Positions 10,086-19,139 of a DNA stretch of 64,000 nucleotides are shown here, one piece after another (within the stretch, counting starts at the first letter, position 1; every line of letters starts with the position of its first letter). Made by a program: the position numbers and the translations under genes. The notes under the pieces are model-generated. The model was not told where the DNA came from. It made no database searches and was given only the letters and a program-made list of their open reading frames with translations. The DNA comes from Trichosphaerium sp. ATCC 40318 (taxonomy: Eukaryota; Protista; Tubulinea), in NCBI GenBank assembly GCA_038496445.1, contig JALMLS010000204.1, positions 186,001-250,000 of the forward strand. The letters are read 5' to 3'.

Positions 10086-10587
10086 CGTTTGTTTATGGGC
10101 GCATGGTATCTGATTCAAAAATAATGTACAAATAACACCTTGTGTAGAAGGTATAAAAGCTAATAACGCAACTCAATAGTAGAAGTGATAACTTTTAATT
10201 GGTTGTGCTTTGTTATACGTACACAAAAAAGCACCCATTTATTTGTTGCTCATTAAAACAGGAAAGTGTTGTTTATTGTCTCGCAGCTAATGGTTCAATG
10301 CGTTTATAGTGTTTTGACATTGTATATGAATGTTCTTGCTACCGCCAATACGTTTCGCTTCTTTAGCTCCACTAGCCGCAGTGCGCATGGATACTTGAAT
10401 TTACGCCAAATTTCTTTCCGCTAGTTATTTTGTAAACTTTCGCAACCACAGGAAAGCACAGGCAAGTTTTCGTATTAAATTCCGAAATCCCGTTTAAACG
10501 CACGTGATATAAGCCGTGGGTGTTTTTTCTGGAGTTGTTTACAATTAGAGTTTCGTTTCCTCCAAAACGCTACCATAAATTGCTACC

Positions 10588-10597
10588 GTCACGTGAC
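10588..10597. promoter_or_regulatory. Perfect palindromic E-box GTCACGTGAC about 90 nt upstream of the 10688 start
   Basis: The sequence is seen directly and equals the CLEAR/bHLH-ZIP consensus. A second CACGTG lies at 10501. Function is inferred only. Confidence 0.35.
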
Positions 10598-10687
10598 TAC
10601 AAAATTAACTTCCGACTTTCTCCTATTTGTAAAAAATCATTTTGGACACAATTCTGTATTCACCCGTTTTAATTTACATTTAGTCAC

Positions 10688-13600
10688 ATGCACGCGACTT
10701 CCTACTGGTGTTTTGCCATTCTAGGCCTCGCCCTCTTTGTGTCATTGGCACTGTCGGCTTCAAACGCCAACCCAGTGACTGTATTCTCGTGTAACGCCAC
10801 CGCAACAAACTGGGGATGTGAAGAATCAGAGTACAGGCTGAAGACAGTGACGAGAAGTGGCCTGAAAGTCCAAGTGCCTAACAGGCTAAGATGTGAAACA
10901 GTCCCATCGCCACTTATGCCTTGGGCTTTAAGGACACAAAGAACGGATGATTATGTTATATTCGCTGGTGAAAGAGCTTCACCACAAACATCGTATGTCC
11001 CTGGTAGTATTGTAGATATTACACTTAGGGTAACGAAGTACAACGCAAAATACCGCGGGCTGATGATGTACGTATCGCAGCTTATTCTTTCAAATCGAAC
11101 CGATTGATTTTTTTTTTTGGTTTTCGTTCTCATTTTTTTTCGCGAACAGGTACGCTGAAGATGCTGATCAAAATCACGTTGGTGAGTGGAAGATTTCGGA
11201 CGAGTTTCCAGGTATGTACCTTTTGGAAGAAATTAAAACCACTTTTTTTTTTTGGCACGTGATAACCCCACGTTTATCTTGTTTCTGACTTTTTTGAATT
11301 TTAGCTTTTTTCAATACTCCTTGGTCTGCAAACCATAGTTGTAGACACACAGTAATGCACACAAGCGCAGTTCTAAAACCTCTACGAACAACATTCACTT
11401 TTGTCGCTCCTCCAAAAGGAACAGGCACAATATGGTTCAGAGCTCTTATCAAACGCGGTGATGCAAACACTGGAGACTTTTGGTGGCCAAACATTGACGA
11501 AGATTTCTCCATGACCGAATCTAGCGATCCTTCTCCTACAAACAACGGATGGTTCCAATCTGAGGTACGCAACATAAGCGAGTGCCTGTAACCATGTTAC
11601 TGACAATCCACAGCTTGGACAATCATGTACTGAAAGATGTGACGAAGAAGGCCTTCTTTGTGATATGGTATCAATGGAACGTGTCAATAGTATAAGTCGT
11701 ATAAATGAAGAACTAAGACAATCCGGATTCATATGCAGAAAGCCGTACTTGAGCGGATGCAGCTCCACAGGAACATCTCAAAGTATTGATGGCTTCTGTT
11801 ACTTTGATGATACACGTTGTGAAACCCAAAATAGAATTAACGACCGCGTATCTTGTGACACCAACAGCACAGATCCAGATGATGGGTACGTCTTTCATAG
11901 CAATACCCTATACATTCTAACACCTTGAAGCCTTCGTTTCTGTAAATGCCTTACATCTACACTTGCTCCTGTACAACCAGAAGAAACATTAGTCCCACCA
12001 ACGCCAGGACCAACACCGTTTATCCTACCACCTCTACCAGTGGAAGAGCAAACAGCAGCTTCATCTAGATCTTCCGCTTCTCTCCTTATCACGTGCTTAT
12101 CAATCCTCGGAGTTTCATTCTTTACCGGTCGTGGAAGCTCAAGCACTCAGTTCTTTCTCTTGGTTATCGTGATCGCCTTGGTAGCTATCCCAGCACCTAT
12201 TCAAGGCCACAACTGGATGTTCAGTACCAGTAGACGAACATACGCAAGTACAGAAACACCTTGCCCTCCAAAGATTCAAGACGCTCCTCACGTCCAAGTC
12301 GGTCCTGGTCAGTACTTTGAACTCGAATGGGCTTGCGGTCACAACGATTGGTCTTATTTCGTTGTTGTTCATGAAAAATACGAAGATAAGTTGAAGCTTC
12401 ATACAAAGAGTCTTATGCTTCAATACTTCGACGAAGCACCTGCCAATAAAGTAAGTTCAATACCAATATATCACAGGCAGTTCAGACAGAGGAATGATTT
12501 CCAGACAGCAGCTTATACAAAGTACTATGGAGCAGAAATAAAGGAAGATATGAACAACTTTATTCCTCGACCTGAAGCATTTGGTTCATGGAGAGACGAC
12601 GCTACATTACTACCTTACAAAGACGAATACCACAACGACAACTATGCAGAGTATGAGAACCCTGAAATGCCATGGATCGAGTCTATATTGAGAGCAGAGC
12701 ATCTAATCAGCAGACCTTCTGATGCTGATGTTGCTAAAATTAAAATACCAGGACGTGCTGGTACTGGTAGATACATTGTTCACTGGATATGGAGAGGATA
12801 CCGTGATTGTACTGATGTAGATTATGTAGCTAATCAAGTTGAACATATCTACGGTTTCAAAGAAGATTCGCCTTCATTCACGTGCGTACAAAGATATTTT
12901 CTCTTCTATTTTTTTTCACAACAGTTTTTTGAAAACACGTTTTGTCTGCTGTAGTTGTTTACTTGATACTTACGTTACATGTAGGCGTGTTGATCACTGT
13001 TACTTCCCAAATTACAATAGCGCCCGTACTTGCTCTAGAATCTACGATGACTTCGCTTACTGCGCAAGACATTGTCCTCCATCTTCTACTTCTTGCGCTG
13101 GTGTCGCAGTAATGCCTCTTACAGTAGCCCATAATCCTTACTTCCAAGAATCCGGAATTGTAGATCCTGGATGCTACAGCCACTTTAACTTCACGACTCT
13201 CACTGATCCAGCTGATCAAGTCTATGTCTGCTTCGCTGTAAACGGACGTATTCCTTCAGATACATTCGGCGTAAACGAAATAGTATACGAAGATGACCCG
13301 GCATACCATGCAACATGTTACATGAAGAACTCCGGAAGAACATTCCCAGGATACGTACCACCAAACGAGAAGAAAGTCAGCTGGAAACACGGAGAGAAAT
13401 GCATTGATTGCCATGCCGTTAACTTGAACAAGAATCTATCACGTGTTCCTATATGGCCATTATCAGAAGATTGTATCAACTGCGACAGAGAGCCAGTAAC
13501 AACAGAACCAGTACTAAAACCTGCGTTGGTTGACAAGGTTTTGAATCATTCATGTGACGGAGTTAGAGGATCATGGAAGAACCTTGGAGGAGGTCAGAGA

Positions 13601-13885
13601 CATCACGACTGTAATGGCACTACACACCAACAGTGTCATAAATTGCTTCATATGAACGGAAGGAAGGAGAACCAATTATTCGAAAACGAATGCGCTATTG
13701 TTGCTTCTAAGGATCCTGATTGTACTGATAAGATTACAACTGTTAGAGGTTATATTACATTTGGTACAAGAAGGACAGTTTATTGCTACTGTCAAACGAA
13801 GTTAGAGTGTTGTAATGGATGCTCTCTTGTTGATAAGAGGTCAACTTCTTGGAACGCATTCACTATTGAAACGCCAATAAATTAA
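10688..13885 (+). CDS. Secreted/membrane polyprotein: signal peptide - Reeler domain - Cys-rich module - Pro-rich stalk - TM - internal signal peptide - His-first LPMO/His-brace-like domain - Cys-rich C-terminal domains
   Basis: Introns at about 11069-11149, 11212-11305, 11565-11613, 11886-11930 and 12882-12984 join ORFs 10688, 11355, 11665, 12040 and 12839. Reeler-like SYVPGSIVDITL..YRGLMMYA..VGEW..FTFVAPPKGTGTIWFRALI. Second part begins IQG|HNWMFS and contains EWACGH and GRYIVHWIWRGYRDCTDVD. Confidence 0.8.
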
Positions 13886-14262
13886 ACACAGCACAGAAAA
13901 GACATCATTGCAAATCAAAATAAAAGCACTTTACACACAATAAGAGTTTTTTGTTAAATCAATCTTCTGTTCCCCAACCTCAGCGATACCAACTAACCTT
14001 TTTCGTCTTCACCGTTAACATATCCTTCTACAGATGACGTACGCCTAGGACTAAATCTATTTTGCTATTCCTAAGATTGTGAACAAATGCGTTCCTTGGC
14101 AAACGTACCAGCTGCATTAATTCAGCTTTTAGGAATCGTGTCAGACTTGTAATAGATGGTTCTTACTTTAAAGCAAAGAACCTGTTTGAATAGAGTGGAC
14201 CTGAGCGTCAAAGGCAGTTGAGAAAAGCGGTTAACCGTCTCCAAAGCGAGAAGCTTTAAACA

Positions 14263-16596
14263 ATGCGTATCATACTGATTCTATTAACGCTTGCGGTATT
14301 GTCAATTTATGCCCAAAAGCCTCCAAAACCGCACGTGGTCTTCCTTTTAATAGACGATTACGGTTGGGCAAATGTTGGTTACCACAGGTACGTATAAATA
14401 TTTTGTTAACGTTGTATCTTGCGTGGCTGGTGACCAAACGTTGTCAATATTTTTTAATTAATAATACAAGCAAAAACCTTTCTTGATCACCTTTTTTTCA
14501 AGGCTAAATACACTCAAACTAATAGGGACCCACCTACTGAAGAGGTTCAAACACCAAATATTGATGCATTAGTGGCTGAAGGCATAGAATTAGATAGACA
14601 CTACGTATTCAAGGCATGTTACTTTCACCCTACTTTTCCGATTTCTTTTTCGCACGTGATTGTCTTTATTATTTGCTTTTTTTAACCAACTGATATAGTA
14701 CTGCTCTCCAACTCGTTCTGCTATACAATCAGGAAGAAATCCTATCCACGTCAATGTGTTAAATATCCCACCAACCTACTACAATGCCAGCGATCCTGTT
14801 TCTGGTTTTCAAGGCATTCCAAGGAACATGACAGGTATTGCTGAAAAGATGAAGAGTGCTGGTTATGCTACTCATATGGCAGGCAAATGGTAAGGAACAA
14901 GTATATTAGTGTCATAATGATCGATCCTAGGGACGCCGGCATGGTACCGTTTTTAAAGAGGGTGAAGATTCTCGATTTAAGTTATTTTCATATAGGCGAC
15001 ACCTGACCATTCTCCTCTTGGGAGAGGATACCAAACAAGTCTTCATTACTTTCACCACGAAAACGACTACTGGACGTACGTTCACATAATTGAGCTAGCT
15101 AAAGAAACACCTACTTGATTTGATTTCTGGCTTGTTCCTTATGTTACTACAAGGTACTATGTTGCTCGGTGTTCACAAGAAAATATTGTAGATCTATGGC
15201 ATACTGATGAGCCAGCAAAGTCACTTACTAATCCAAAAACGTGCAGTCAGGAAAATCAAGCAAGTGACTGCGTTTATGAAGATGAGTTATTTGAACAATA
15301 TGTTTTTGATGTTTTGGATAACCATGATCCTTCGACCCCTCTCTTCCTCTTCTGGGCACCTCACTCTATTCATACTCCGCTAGAGGTACAATCACTATAA
15401 CATTGTTACTAACATATTTAAGGTACCTAAAGAGTATGTAGACAAGTTCTCATTTATTGACAACAAATCACGACGAATGTATCATGTAAGATCCTTTTTG
15501 TGTGAGACAGCTTTTTTTATGACTTTTAACTTAGGCTATGGTGAACTTTATTGATTCACGTATTGGCATGATTGTAAACAAGTTGAAGGAAAAAGGCATG
15601 TACGAAGATACATTGATTGTAATGTCAGCAGATAACGGAGGTCCAATTTATGGCAATGGTATTGTGGTTTACTTTTCAGACTGAGATGTTTGTTAACCTT
15701 ACAAGGTACTTCTGGAGGAAATAATTGGCCATTACGAGGTGGAAAGGTGAGTAACTTTGAAGGAGGCGTAAGAGTCAACGCTTTTGCTTCTGGAGGTCTA
15801 GTACGTAAACGAAAATGATGTAGTCTTCAGTTGTTTTTTTTTACATACCAAACTAGATTCCAAAAGAACGGCGAGGAACTAAGGAAGAAGGGTATATCTG
15901 TGGATGGGATTGGTATGCTACGTTCTGTGCTATAGCAGGTGTTGATCCAACTGATGAAAAAGCTGCTAAAGGTAATGCAATCATAAAAATTCACTTAAAG
16001 TCTTCTCTAAGGTTTCGCTAGCAAAATTACCTCCAATTGACTCTCTCAACATGTGGCCTCTTTTATCTGGACAGACGAAGACAAGTCCACGTAACATAAT
16101 TCCCCTGGGAAGTCCAGATCCTCCTGAAGAGAGAATGAGTGTCGTACCTACAATAGTGAATGGAATAATAGTAGGTGAATGGAAGGTAAACGCTACATGC
16201 AAAGTAAATGGACTAAACAATTAACAGCTCCTTGTTGGTAATATATCTCAAGATTCTTGGACCGGTCCACGGTACCCTAATGTTACTACAAATTGGGAAT
16301 CAACAGCTCATCATCTGTCTTGTGGAACAGGTGGTTGCCTATTCAACATTAAGAATGGTAAGAGAAGCTTGTCAAGGCCATGTGAAGTTGGTTGTCATTA
16401 ACTTTGTTTCTTATTAGATCCAACTGAACACGTGAATTTGGCAAGTCAGGAACCTACAATACTTGCTGAACTACACACTCATTTGAAAACAGCTCAAGCA
16501 TCAGTTTTTAGCCCTCATAGAGGAACTATATCACCAAAAGCATGTGAAGACGCTATCAACAAGTACAACGGATATTGGGGACCTTTTGTTGAATAA
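14263..16596 (+). CDS. Secreted arylsulfatase B-like (S1, formylglycine-dependent) sulfatase, multi-exon
   Basis: Signal peptide, then KPHVVFLLIDDYGW, TPNIDAL, YCSPTRSAIQSGR (CxPxR), GKWDAG, SADNGG, NNWPLRGGKVSNFEGGVRV and DPTEHVNLA. Stop TAA 16594-16596. Confidence 0.92.
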
Positions 16597-16743: not shown

Positions 16744-17611
16744 TTAACCCCTTAGTGTTGTCATTTGTTCTCCGCCTGACCACGAATATTCACCTTTTCC
16801 ACTACATAAATTATTCTCAAATATTCCTATGTATCTTGAACCATTAGGCCATTTAATATCTCCAAACGTCATGTCATTATTCACAAAAGTACCAAAGAAA
16901 TTTTGTCCATCAGGCCACACCTTACACAAAATTAATTCACGTGATTACCATTATTTATGTCATGTTTACCTTTGTACCAATCCCACTTATTTTATCGTTT
17001 CTGAAGTATCCCGTATACCGACTTCCATCGGAGAGCTTAGCTGCTCCTAATCCGCTTATCTTACCATCAATGAATTGTCCTATAAACTCAGTTCCATCTG
17101 GCCACTTCTTACAGCCTTTACCATTCATACGGCCATTCTTAAACTCTCCGATATATTTCTCTCCACTAGGCCATGTATATTCACCTCTGTGACTCATCTT
17201 ACCATCCTCAAAGGATCCAACATACATGCCACCATTTGGAAACGTTTTAGTTCCAACAACAATTTTTCCATTCCGGAATTGACCACAACATTTTGTACCA
17301 TCTGCCCATTCTTTGCTTCCAAAACCTTCTACTTTGTCGTCTTTAAACTCTCCGGTATAACGAGAACCATTTAACCAAGTCCTTATTCCATTTCCATTAA
17401 ACTTATCGTTCTTAAAGCGCCCTTCATACGACTCCCCATTGGGCCATTTGTAAACACCATATCCATTAAATGCATCGTTTCTAAATTCTCCTTCGTAAGT
17501 CTCTCCGTTGCTCCATTTGAATAGTCCTCTTCCATGCATTTTACCATCTAAAAAGCCTCCGATGTAGCAATCATCAGCAAACCAAGTCTTCTCCGGAATG
17601 TCAGTGCTCAT
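16744..17611 (-). CDS. MORN-repeat protein (about 11 repeats), one intron 16921-16969
   Basis: Repeated YxGxFxNxKxxGxGxxxWxxG units. Splicing AAG|gtaaac...gtaag|GTG joins the two ORFs. Confidence 0.88.
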
Positions 17612-17912
17612 GTGGCTGTTTCGTTTGCGCTTAAAAATTATGATAACAAACTAGCTGCAGTATCCTATGTGTACTGGAATTGTTTAGCACGTGCACAAAA
17701 TTAGAAGTTGTAGACAAGATGTTAAAGCACTTTTTTTAGTGGCAGTCTGTTGAGTGTGGGAGAAACCAAACAAACAGCAAAACTCCGGTGCGAGTAAATA
17801 GATGCCAGAGTAGACGAAAGTTGACTGATTCCGTTTTCAGTTGGTTCTGCCTCAAACAGATGTGGTGTACGCAATACAACACAATGGGGAAAGCATTTGT
17901 TATCTCAACGGA

Positions 17913-19139
17913 ATGACAACAAACAATATTAGGACGCCAAAAAAACAACAAATACATTCTTCCAAGCAAATTTCAGTCAATGATCTACCTCCAGAGATGT
18001 TGACGCATGTTCTAAGCTATTTAAACAAAGAACAGCGTATAGAAGTGACTACAGTCTGTCACGAGTTTAATGAAGTCATTCGTCATAATATTGGATTTAA
18101 TACCATCACCATAAAAGAAAAATCAGATTGTCTTGTTCTAAAAGACAGTCCGTTGCTAAAAAACACCAAACTCATTGTCAATCATGGACAAATGTTTTAC
18201 TTGGAGGAACTCAAACTATCAGAGACTGAGATGGGTTATCTTCGTGGTGTTCATACCATAGATGTTTACAAGGCTGTAATAGACGATAAAGGTATTCTGG
18301 CACTCGTTGAAGGAGGACAACATATCCACAATATCACGTTAGGTGGAGGCACAACAGATATTTCATTGAAGGCTCTCAAGTCAGTACATACAATCGATAT
18401 TTGTGGTTGTAGGAATATTACTATTGAAGGGATAAAAGCACTTAAAGATGTACATGAGATAACACTCAGCAAACCAGAACCTGGATGGTTAGAACAACTT
18501 GGTAATGTGCACAAAGTTTGTTTATATCCAGGATCTGTTATTGGCGAAGATCAAGCCAAATCGTTAATCAAAACCAAACACTTGGCTTTACATTATACAA
18601 AGATAAAAGAAAACGTGTTTATACATTTAACCAATCTGGAGTGCATTGAAATCACATCTAGTATGACTTCAGACTCAGGGTTAAAGCATTTGGTGAATCT
18701 CACAAAACTCAAACTTAATGATTGCCTAGAGGTGACAGGTTCATGTTTTGAGCACTTGGTCAAACTTAAACATGTTACACTTAAATCATGTTGGAAGCTC
18801 GACAGCTGTAGTTTACAGCACTTGACAAATGTTGATCACCTCAACCTAATCATGTCCCCTGTTAAAGATATGGGCCTTCAGCACTTGGGTCATTTGAAGC
18901 GCCTCACACTCTCACGTTGTGGCTACATTAATGGACCAGGTTTACTGTATTTGGTTAACCTTGAGTACCTTAACCTTCGACATTGTGAAATGGTTTTACC
19001 TGGACATTTGAAGCACTTGACTTCTCTCCAGTACTTAGAGGTTAGCCAAAATGAAGCCAAAGTCTTTAAGAAGCAGGCTGAAGAACTGGGCGCTGTTTTA
19101 TTTGTAACATACAGTGACGATAACATATACTCTTTCTAA
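17913..19139 (+). CDS. Intronless F-box + leucine-rich-repeat protein
   Basis: F-box INDLPPEMLTHVLSYL-type motif (VNDLPPEMLTHVLSYL..VTTVCHEFNEV). LRRs such as GVHTIDV and LKHLVNLTKLKLNDCLEVT. First ATG at 17913. Confidence 0.88.
   Translation: MTTNNIRTPKKQQIHSSKQISVNDLPPEMLTHVLSYLNKEQRIEVTTVCHEFNEVIRHNIGFNTITIKEKSDCLVLKDSPLLKNTKLIVNHGQMFYLEELKLSETEMGYLRGVHTIDVYKAVIDDKGILALVEGGQHIHNITLGGGTTDISLKALKSVHTIDICGCRNITIEGIKALKDVHEITLSKPEPGWLEQLGNVHKVCLYPGSVIGEDQAKSLIKTKHLALHYTKIKENVFIHLTNLECIEITSSMTSDSGLKHLVNLTKLKLNDCLEVTGSCFEHLVKLKHVTLKSCWKLDSCSLQHLTNVDHLNLIMSPVKDMGLQHLGHLKRLTLSRCGYINGPGLLYLVNLEYLNLRHCEMVLPGHLKHLTSLQYLEVSQNEAKVFKKQAEELGAVLFVTYSDDNIYSF

Follow-up and report, generated by a model that had tools for sequence, protein, structure and literature searches.

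We found that a single gene (10688-13885, forward strand) in a 64-kb stretch of DNA from the protist Trichosphaerium sp. ATCC 40318 (the window, by which we mean the whole stretch analyzed) encodes a precursor in which a Reeler-type half and a half led by a histidine are joined by two hydrophobic segments flanking a short basic loop. This junction design, with the His directly after it, is conserved throughout a large protist family. The precursor displays, in order, an N-terminal signal peptide, a Reeler-type module, a Cys-rich module, a Pro-rich stalk, a first hydrophobic segment (TM1), a 9-residue basic loop, a 13-residue hydrophobic core, the peptide PAPIQG and a domain beginning His-Asn-Trp, which we term the HNW domain. 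On balance, the sequence and the structural models favor a cellular secretory-pathway polyprotein, in which the cutting of an internal signal peptide would free the first His of a copper domain resembling lytic polysaccharide monooxygenases (LPMOs).

We envisage that the N-terminal signal peptide would take the chain into the endoplasmic reticulum, with the Reeler-type and Cys-rich modules entering the lumen, until segment 1 halts transfer and the short basic loop remains in the cytosol. Segment 2 would then re-enter the membrane with its N-terminus inside and its C-terminus outside, in the manner of a signal peptide, and signal peptidase would cut after PAPIQG, so that a soluble protein composed of the HNW domain, a second Cys-rich domain and a PAN/apple domain would start with a free His418. 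The upstream Reeler product would be held in the membrane by segment 1, with the loop and the used signal still attached if signal peptide peptidase does not trim them off, and copper would be held by His1, through its free amino group and its side chain, along with His45 and Tyr198. A sensor-plus-effector role for the two products is a speculation.

Transcript and junction

The window is eukaryotic DNA (38% G+C) with short GT..AG introns, and six exons join into an open reading frame (ORF) of 941 residues with a single stop at its end:

10688-11067, forward: coding exon 1
11150-11211, forward: coding exon 2
11305-11564, forward: coding exon 3
11614-11885, forward: coding exon 4
11931-12881, forward: coding exon 5
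12985-13885, forward: coding exon 6

When RNA contigs from public runs were aligned to positions 10500-14100 of the window, three of them, each from a different study, crossed the junction unbroken: X9 record 7 (2911 nt, spanning 10682-13938), X2 record 3 (10500-13897) and X1 record 2 (10937-13940). Exactly the five modeled GT..AG introns are missing from these contigs, which marks them as processed RNA, and no joint beyond the five coding introns was reported over the aligned region. Both halves are encoded by a single mRNA. From the exon 5 acceptor (AG at 11929-11930) to the His codon (11931-12207) there is no in-frame ATG; the sole ATG triplet in 11931-12210, at 11946, is in another frame. 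Between the runs and the window there are 14 coding differences, distributed over both halves, 13 of them synonymous and one an Asp to Glu change, a pattern that places both halves under purifying selection as one gene. A strain variant at the last base before the His codon (12207 C>A) keeps the Gly at -1. A preliminary description of this DNA had proposed one spliced ORF and had placed both hydrophobic segments, the loop, the His codon and the acceptor at positions that all proved exact. Its statement that no in-frame ATG separates 11930 from the His holds, and the RNA contigs both bear out the six-exon ORF and carry it across 11886-11930; they contain no separate transcript or alternative first exon that would give the second half its own Met, which that description had named as fatal to its proposal.

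The junction itself comprises the following elements:

12076..12123, forward: hydrophobic segment 1 (TM1), ASLLITCLSILGVSFF, 16 residues, the predicted stop-transfer anchor of the Reeler product
12124..12150, forward: polar loop TGRGSSSTQ, 9 residues with one Arg, predicted to be cytosolic
12151..12207, forward: internal Met-less signal peptide, a 13-residue hydrophobic core (h-region) followed by the c-region PAPIQG, with the predicted signal-peptidase cut between 12207 and 12208
12208-12210, forward: His codon (His418), directly after PAPIQG

This arrangement has the layout of a eukaryotic signal peptide, with the single-Arg loop as n-region, the 13-residue h-region and a c-region whose -1 and -3 residues are small and uncharged (Gly at -1, Ile at -3, Pro at -4 and -6). 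Short h-regions are what the signal peptidase complex selects for (PMC13578380), and a core of 13 residues is consistent with this requirement. We judged the site by the classical -3/-1 rules (A, G, S or C at -1; A, V, S, T, C, G, I or L at -3), with the family serving as a natural mutagenesis series in place of a signal-peptide predictor.

The family was collected with the 224-residue stretch beginning at the His as query. The species' own 70-Mb assembly gave 54 six-frame matches on ~50 distinct loci, nearly all aligning from query residue 1, and thus holds at least 45 paralogs. Reading the upstream frame of 49 loci yielded 43 distinct junctions, in each of which a single exon carries the same series of elements: R-[FMLI]-C-K/R-C, a Pro-rich stalk, segment 1, a loop of 4-14 residues with K/R, segment 2, a Pro-containing c-region and H-N-W. 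An exhaustive search with HMMER, covering 1.84 billion proteins that represent, one apiece, the 50%-identity clusters of ~15 billion, matched 416 clusters at E ≤ 0.001. Among the best 150 of these 416, 128 align from query residue 1, with a His at that position in 128/128, and they divide into 86 internal relatives (the domain lying 90-920 residues into the protein), 33 in which the same His directly follows an ordinary N-terminal Met signal peptide (7-45 residues from the Met) and 9 fragmentary or ambiguous entries. Where a source is named, it is one of the amoebae Flabellula baltica and Rhizamoeba saxonica, an acantharian or an MMETSP transcriptome, and complete transcriptome ORFs with both halves in one frame are found in Flabellula, Rhizamoeba and two MMETSP assemblies. 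The junction recurs far beyond chance, since it is present in 43/43 paralog junctions and in 86/86 internal-type relatives, 76 of which also share the N-module. Thus, the search of protist proteins that the preliminary description called for returned the same junction in quantity, and its reliance on a conserved His is borne out by all 128 aligned relatives and all 43 paralogs.

Conservation is sharpest where a signal peptidase would need it. The -3/-1 rule holds in 129/129 internal junctions (86/86 relatives and 43/43 paralogs), with the following residues:

86 internal relatives: at -1, A 71, G 9, S 6; at -3, A 38, V 22, S 9, T 8, C 7, G 2
43 paralogs: at -1, A 27, G 15, C 1; at -3, T 14, A 13, I 8, V 6, S 2

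A charged or large polar residue occurs at -1 or -3 in 0/129 internal junctions, while position -2 is free, with eight or more kinds of residue (D, E, H, Q and R among them); Pro is frequent from -4 to -6. The Met-signal relatives follow the -3 rule in 33/33 and the -1 rule in 30/33 cases. Segment 1 is present in 42/43 paralogs and 75/86 relatives (family median length 14-15 residues), and the loop (median 6-7 residues) contains K or R in 42/42 paralogs and 74/75 relatives, being net negative only once. A basic loop in nearly all members fits a cytosolic loop followed by a second segment oriented N-in/C-out. Given a rule-conforming site here and such constraint at -1 and -3, we consider the signal-peptidase cleavage before the His that the preliminary description predicted to be likely.

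Two further observations concern the junctions. Most paralogs carry the motif S-P-[AS]-[ST]-[KR]-[PST] directly before segment 1, possibly a site of juxtamembrane glycosylation or shedding, or an omega-like site. The search of the species' own genome produced no clear paralog with a simple Met-signal-His start; one locus (L039, G000:C24:238358-240220, minus strand) has 29 open codons before the HNW domain, including Met residues (…RMCSFGMPIVAL…), and may possess its own N-terminal signal peptide or an extra intron.

The HNW domain and alternative readings

The elements that bear on the copper site are:

12208..12879, forward: HNW domain, 224 residues, an LPMO-like beta-sandwich according to an AlphaFold2 model and fold matches
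12208-12210, 12340-12342 and 12799-12801, forward: putative brace residues His1, His45 and Tyr198, i.e., His418, His462 and Tyr615 of the precursor

With the family alignment as input, AlphaFold2 returned a model with a predicted local distance difference test score (pLDDT) of 93.5 and a predicted template modeling score of 0.91, in which the domain forms an immunoglobulin (Ig)-like beta-sandwich with a ~90-residue, partly helical insertion between the second His and the C-terminal strands. VIA-align, which is independent of Foldseek, ranks an AA15 LPMO (5msz; Z 7.5, a middling value, root-mean-square deviation 2.7, 118 residues aligned) and the X325 protein LaX325 (6ibh; Z 7.5, 126/150 aligned) jointly at the top, followed by AA13 (Z 6.4), AA10 (Z 6.0) and, lower, AA11, AA16 and AA9. 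LPMO or LPMO-like chains account for 15 of the top 44 structural matches and align from model residue 1, mostly from the chain's own mature first residue. In the ESM Atlas, the domain reaches a TM score of 0.50 to a haptophyte cluster annotated as chitin-binding type-4, with LPMO_10 in 22% of its members, and protein-language-model features link it to an LPMO_10-bearing cluster (0.90, 193 shared features) and, at a lower score of 0.78, to BIM1-like clusters. Across 77 aligned sequences with a mean column identity of 27%, H1, H45 and Y73 are invariant and Y198 is near-invariant.

The same genome also encodes a canonical LPMO (L051:928-1968:-, on contig C163 of G000) with a signal peptide, an HGRL start, a long Pro-rich linker and a C-terminal Cys-containing domain. 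It scores 44 bits with Pfam AA9 and 25 bits with LPMO_10, and it is the only such locus found, versus ~45 HNW paralogs. The HNW family was compared by hhalign with this LPMO alone and then with its 9-member family (alignment A5). One resulting alignment (E 0.028, probability 2%) pairs H1 with H1, P-C with V-C, and G-Q-x-F-x-v-E-W-a-t-G-H of the HNW family with A-G-x6-W-x3-A-a-H, the LPMO motif that holds the second brace His. Another (E 0.0024, probability 12%), colinear with it, pairs I-P-x3-G-x-G-x-Y-I-V-h-W-x-W-x-G...Y-x-D-C-x-D-V with I-P-x-w-x-P-s...L-R-W-E-W-Y-A-L...F-Y-x-Q-C-v-D-V, bringing the YxDCxDV motif of the HNW domain onto the axial-Tyr motif YxQCvDV. The axial copper ligand of AA9 enzymes is the Tyr of their Y-x-x-C motif. 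These pairings are motif-level leads and not proof of homology. Histidine-brace proteins use an N-terminal His (PMC7924993), which is the position that the predicted cut would expose.

Because the fold, feature and motif lines combine, each being weak or moderate alone, the best reading is that the HNW domain most likely belongs to the LPMO/X325 superfamily, as a strongly diverged member, and we predict that His1, His45 and Tyr198 probably form a copper histidine brace. The LPMO-like domain put forward in the preliminary description is supported by a middling fold match from residue 1, by language-model features and by weak pairings of the conserved H1, H45 and Y198, not by sequence membership of a known family. 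The domain may oxidize prey or matrix glycans or may handle copper; we favor a glycan- or surface-directed role over simple copper uptake because of the ~45 diversified paralogs and the PAN/apple lectin-type domain that accompanies it.

The second product would continue with two further domains:

12985..13513, forward: conserved Cys-rich domain of ~170 residues directly after the HNW domain, homologous in relatives including short Met-signal types such as P0014 (alignment A2)
13514..13885, forward: C-terminal PAN/apple domain and stop codon, assigned by VIA-align and language-model features

The Cys-rich domain gave no match in a VIA-align fold search (Z ~2 at most). In the exon-6 model (pLDDT 85.6), the PAN/apple part occupies residues 177-298, and its top 12 VIA-align matches are all PAN/apple or PAN/apple-type MANEC domains, led by the HGF N domain (Z 6.6, 81/91 aligned) and including leech antiplatelet protein (Z 6.5), the kallikrein apple domain (6.3) and the TgMIC4 and SML-2 lectins. 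Protein-language-model features of the C-terminal domain likewise point to PAN families; exon 6 has no Pfam match, and Foldseek against the PDB with its model returned nothing at E < 0.02. The C-terminus lacks a hydrophobic tail, and therefore the second product would be soluble. Complex prediction of the N-module of relative P0010 against the HNW domain of the same protein gave a median of 0.41 (0.41, 0.00, 0.51) versus 0.03 for the best control, with a partner pLDDT of ~50 and runs agreeing in at least 48% of contacts, which the tool grades as 'weak support'; passes at or below 0.60 comprise, by its own counts, only 5/78 solved complexes and all 4 mismatches that passed, and we make no claim of binding between the N-module and the HNW domain.

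Several points weigh against the proposed polyprotein. Cleavage, the HNWM N-terminus, release, copper binding and substrate are all inferred. The yeast signal peptidase complex cuts less as the region ahead of a signal lengthens (PMC13578380); therefore, internal signals behind a membrane anchor can stay uncut. This lends weight to an uncleaved two-pass membrane protein, a permanent hairpin displaying the Reeler-type and HNW domains on one chain with the His not free, and the topology of lumenal domain, transmembrane segment, basic loop, transmembrane segment and lumenal domain is that of an ordinary hairpin protein. A permanent anchor, however, has no need of small residues at -1 and -3, which every internal junction nevertheless retains while -2 varies; a 13-residue h-region with a Pro-containing c-region is short for a stable anchor, and in the 33 Met-signal relatives, the identical His stands directly behind an ordinary N-terminal signal peptide. 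We therefore regard the hairpin as unlikely. The copper site faces a different set of objections. The HNW domain has no Pfam match at E ≤ 1, and 0/77 members significantly match any Pfam LPMO model, apart from an isolated AA9 match (E 0.0057) in one of the 77; it has no sequence match to the X325/BIM1-like Pfam family PF20238; Foldseek against the PDB with the HNW model returned nothing at E < 0.02; a profile search of PDB sequences with the family found no LPMO and only a chance match to HopA1; and a homolog search with the domain profile found 4 proteins, none of them Pfam-annotated and none giving a link to LPMO_10. By the calibration of VIA-align, Z < 8 can mean a common arrangement, and other Ig-like sandwiches score 5-7; both hhalign pairings are low-probability local alignments; and the second-sphere Glu/Gln two residues before the canonical axial Tyr has no counterpart in the HNW domain. 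These leave room for a chain that is cut but whose HNW domain is a beta-sandwich binding module, with its conserved His serving another purpose and no copper brace. What speaks against such a module is that residues invariant or near-invariant at such low identity (H1, H45, Y198) all fall on LPMO brace motifs in colinear alignments, that LPMO chains are enriched atop the structural list and aligned from residue 1, and that the language-model features lead to LPMO_10 and BIM1-like clusters; on this evidence, we consider a binding module improbable.

The remaining alternatives concern segment 1 and the origin of the second half. X325/Bim1 proteins are glycosylphosphatidylinositol (GPI)-anchored, and segment 1 might be a GPI-attachment signal, leaving the Reeler product GPI-anchored and the piece from TM1 to the signal discarded; its shortness (16 residues here) and the small residues AASSRSSAS before it, which could hold an omega site, agree with this. 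A GPI signal, however, normally ends its protein, whereas here 28 further residues follow, including the basic cytosolic loop, and many paralogs have SPSSRP or SPA[ST]K[ST] before segment 1, a poor omega/omega+2 fit. Of the two anchors between which the preliminary description left the choice, we thus favor a transmembrane one provided by segment 1 and judge GPI attachment to be quite unlikely, slightly more so than the hairpin. Synthesis of the two halves separately, through an internal promoter, an alternative first exon or non-AUG initiation, could call on one low-coverage contig (X3 record 5) that begins at 12112, but this contig starts with Illumina adapter sequence and so marks a fragment end, not a transcript start. 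With no joint besides the five introns, no in-frame ATG before His418 and a fusion that lies within a single exon in 43 paralogs and within a single ORF in the transcriptomes of other organisms, separate synthesis is improbable in the extreme.

N-terminal half and surroundings of the gene

The remaining features of the transcript are:

10435..10462 (joint ± up to 2 nt), forward: exon of the 5' untranslated region (UTR), from the loose 5' ends of the X9 (26 letters) and X1 (11 letters) contigs, which match window ~10435-10460
10463..10683, forward: 5' UTR intron, ~221 nt with GC..AG ends, skipped in the X9 and X1 contigs
10688..10759, forward: start codon and N-terminal signal peptide of ~24 residues ending in LALSA, read by eye from a hydrophobic core followed by small residues
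10985..11432, forward: Reeler-type domain, ~residues 100-190, split over exons 1-3, assigned by homology to relatives P0006 and P0017
11614..11885, forward: Cys-rich module of the N-terminal product (exon 4), with conserved Cys columns
11931..12075, forward: RFCKC motif and Pro-rich stalk at the start of exon 5, both conserved in paralogs
12882..12984, forward: intron 5, 103 nt, GT..AG, absent from the X1, X2, X3 and X9 contigs

The match of the loose contig ends indicates that a short leader exon is joined via the GC..AG intron just upstream of the ATG. X2 record 3 is colinear from 10500, so that it either retains this intron or starts downstream inside it.

Over its first 270 residues, the precursor shows homology to the N-terminal parts of the 76 internal-type relatives that share the N-module, with E down to 1e-79. 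A Pfam scan of this gene's single exons produced no Reeler match and nothing above noise, and the domain cannot be scored directly on this copy because two introns split it over three exons. The Reeler label therefore rests on transitive homology via relatives that pass the Pfam threshold. Residues 70-321 align to P0006 (E 4e-42) and P0017 (E 6e-39), of which residues 65-158 and 60-149, respectively, score 34.9 and 37.3 bits against the Pfam Reeler (PF02014) threshold of 21 bits. Half of the family's N-modules (18/36) match Pfam Reeler at E ≤ 0.1 (best E 1.1e-10), a likeness to known Reeler-domain proteins from which this copy differs in giving no direct score. For the Reeler domain named in the preliminary description, the backing thus comes from aligned relatives and not from a Pfam match on its own exon pieces. 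The Cys-rich module (11614-11885; residues 213-298 of P0010) repeatedly matches, below threshold, the final 85 positions of Pfam Glyco_transf_18 (GnT-V), as seen in 9/36 relatives with a best E of 3.7e-5, and the two may share a C-terminal domain.

The window contains 43 copies of the heptamer CACGTGA, frequently in the form of the palindrome TCACGTGA, versus 6.2 expected, a count reached in 0/100 shuffles. Near the gene, copies lie at 10501, 10589/10590 and 11256, two of them <200 bp upstream of the ATG, and the heptamer may be a common promoter element of this genome. The next gene downstream (14263-14397) begins with a signal peptide followed by a stretch, VVFLLIDDYGWANVGYH, which we take to resemble a sulfatase N-terminus; its 44-residue exon has no Pfam match at E ≤ 0.01. 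Further on lie two neighboring intron-less ORFs, one for a MORN-repeat protein (16958-17611, reverse strand, E 2e-45) and one for an F-box-like and leucine-rich-repeat protein (17841-19136, forward strand).

Comparison with known systems

The proposed mechanism combines two known things, the maturation of a histidine brace by signal-peptide removal (PMC7924993) and the internal signal cleavage of viral polyproteins (PMC7926653). We found no description of this design in full-text literature on internal signals, LPMOs and the histidine brace, Reeler domains, cellular polyproteins and Amoebozoa LPMOs. Nor did we find a paper linking Reeler domains to an LPMO-like partner; the words Reeler and LPMO co-occurred in a single paper, on a barnacle adhesive proteome. 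To our knowledge, in every described histidine-brace case, the His is freed by the removal of an ordinary N-terminal signal peptide. If the proposal is true, histidine-brace domains can hide in the middle of precursors, where they would be missed by LPMO mining, which typically looks for a signal peptide and His at the protein start, and the LPMO superfamily would gain a large family outside Pfam (the 416 clusters). It would also supply a conserved cellular example of a signal-peptidase polyprotein strategy otherwise known mainly from enveloped viruses. A Reeler surface protein and its putative oxidative or copper-binding partner would necessarily be made 1:1, which offers a handle on the poorly understood function of Reeler domains. 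A bolder possibility, which we hold to be doubtful, is that such cellular polyproteins are protist-wide, one cut by signal peptidase, in the role of a maturation enzyme, both detaching a membrane-bound Reeler receptor from its partner and giving a new, unclassified LPMO-superfamily enzyme its copper-binding N-terminus, and that the products stay together as a 1:1 recognition-plus-oxidation complex of the surface or phagosome, a cellular counterpart of viral glycoprotein heterodimers.

LPMOs of the AA10, AA15, AA9, AA11 and AA13 families are secreted beta-sandwiches whose mature first residue is a His exposed by signal-peptide removal, as is predicted for the HNW domain. In both, another His follows the next pair of strands, a Tyr within a motif of the Y-x-x-C-x-D-V type lies close to the C-terminus, and the third residue is aromatic (HNW here, HGY or HGW in AA10). 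The HNW domain differs from LPMOs in lacking Pfam or sequence membership, in its ~90-residue insertion, in having no Glu/Gln two residues before the Tyr, in being followed by Cys-rich and PAN/apple domains instead of the usual carbohydrate-binding modules, and in that the signal peptide that would free the His lies 400 residues inside the precursor. The X325/Bim1 proteins of fungi are histidine-brace copper binders with no detected polysaccharide-degrading activity and act in copper uptake (PMC7924993). LaX325 is the equal best structural match of the HNW domain, and BIM1-like clusters are among its language-model neighbors, but the two share no sequence similarity, X325 has an ordinary N-terminal signal peptide, and ~45 diversified HNW copies in one genome would be unexpected of a copper-uptake helper.

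Internal signals in cellular proteins are represented by yeast Rrt6, Ecm38 and Kar2, signal-peptidase substrates in which the hydrophobic core begins some way in from the N-terminus (PMC13578380). In these, 10-33 cytosolic residues precede the signal, whereas here ~400 do, including folded lumenal domains and a first membrane segment. Flavivirus prM-E and the pestiviruses and hepatitis C virus use the signal-peptidase polyprotein strategy. In the bunyaviruses, Gn-Gc is an envelope polyprotein with an internal signal cut by the host signal peptidase (PMC7926653). The likeness to these viral envelope polyproteins extends to the anchor, the short cytosolic loop, the internal signal with its -3/-1 site and, as predicted here, two lumenal products made 1:1, with the spent signal left on the upstream one. 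Unlike them, the precursor described here belongs to a cellular, intron-containing gene family of free-living protists, and its predicted cut would not just separate two subunits but also create a catalytic or metal-binding N-terminus.

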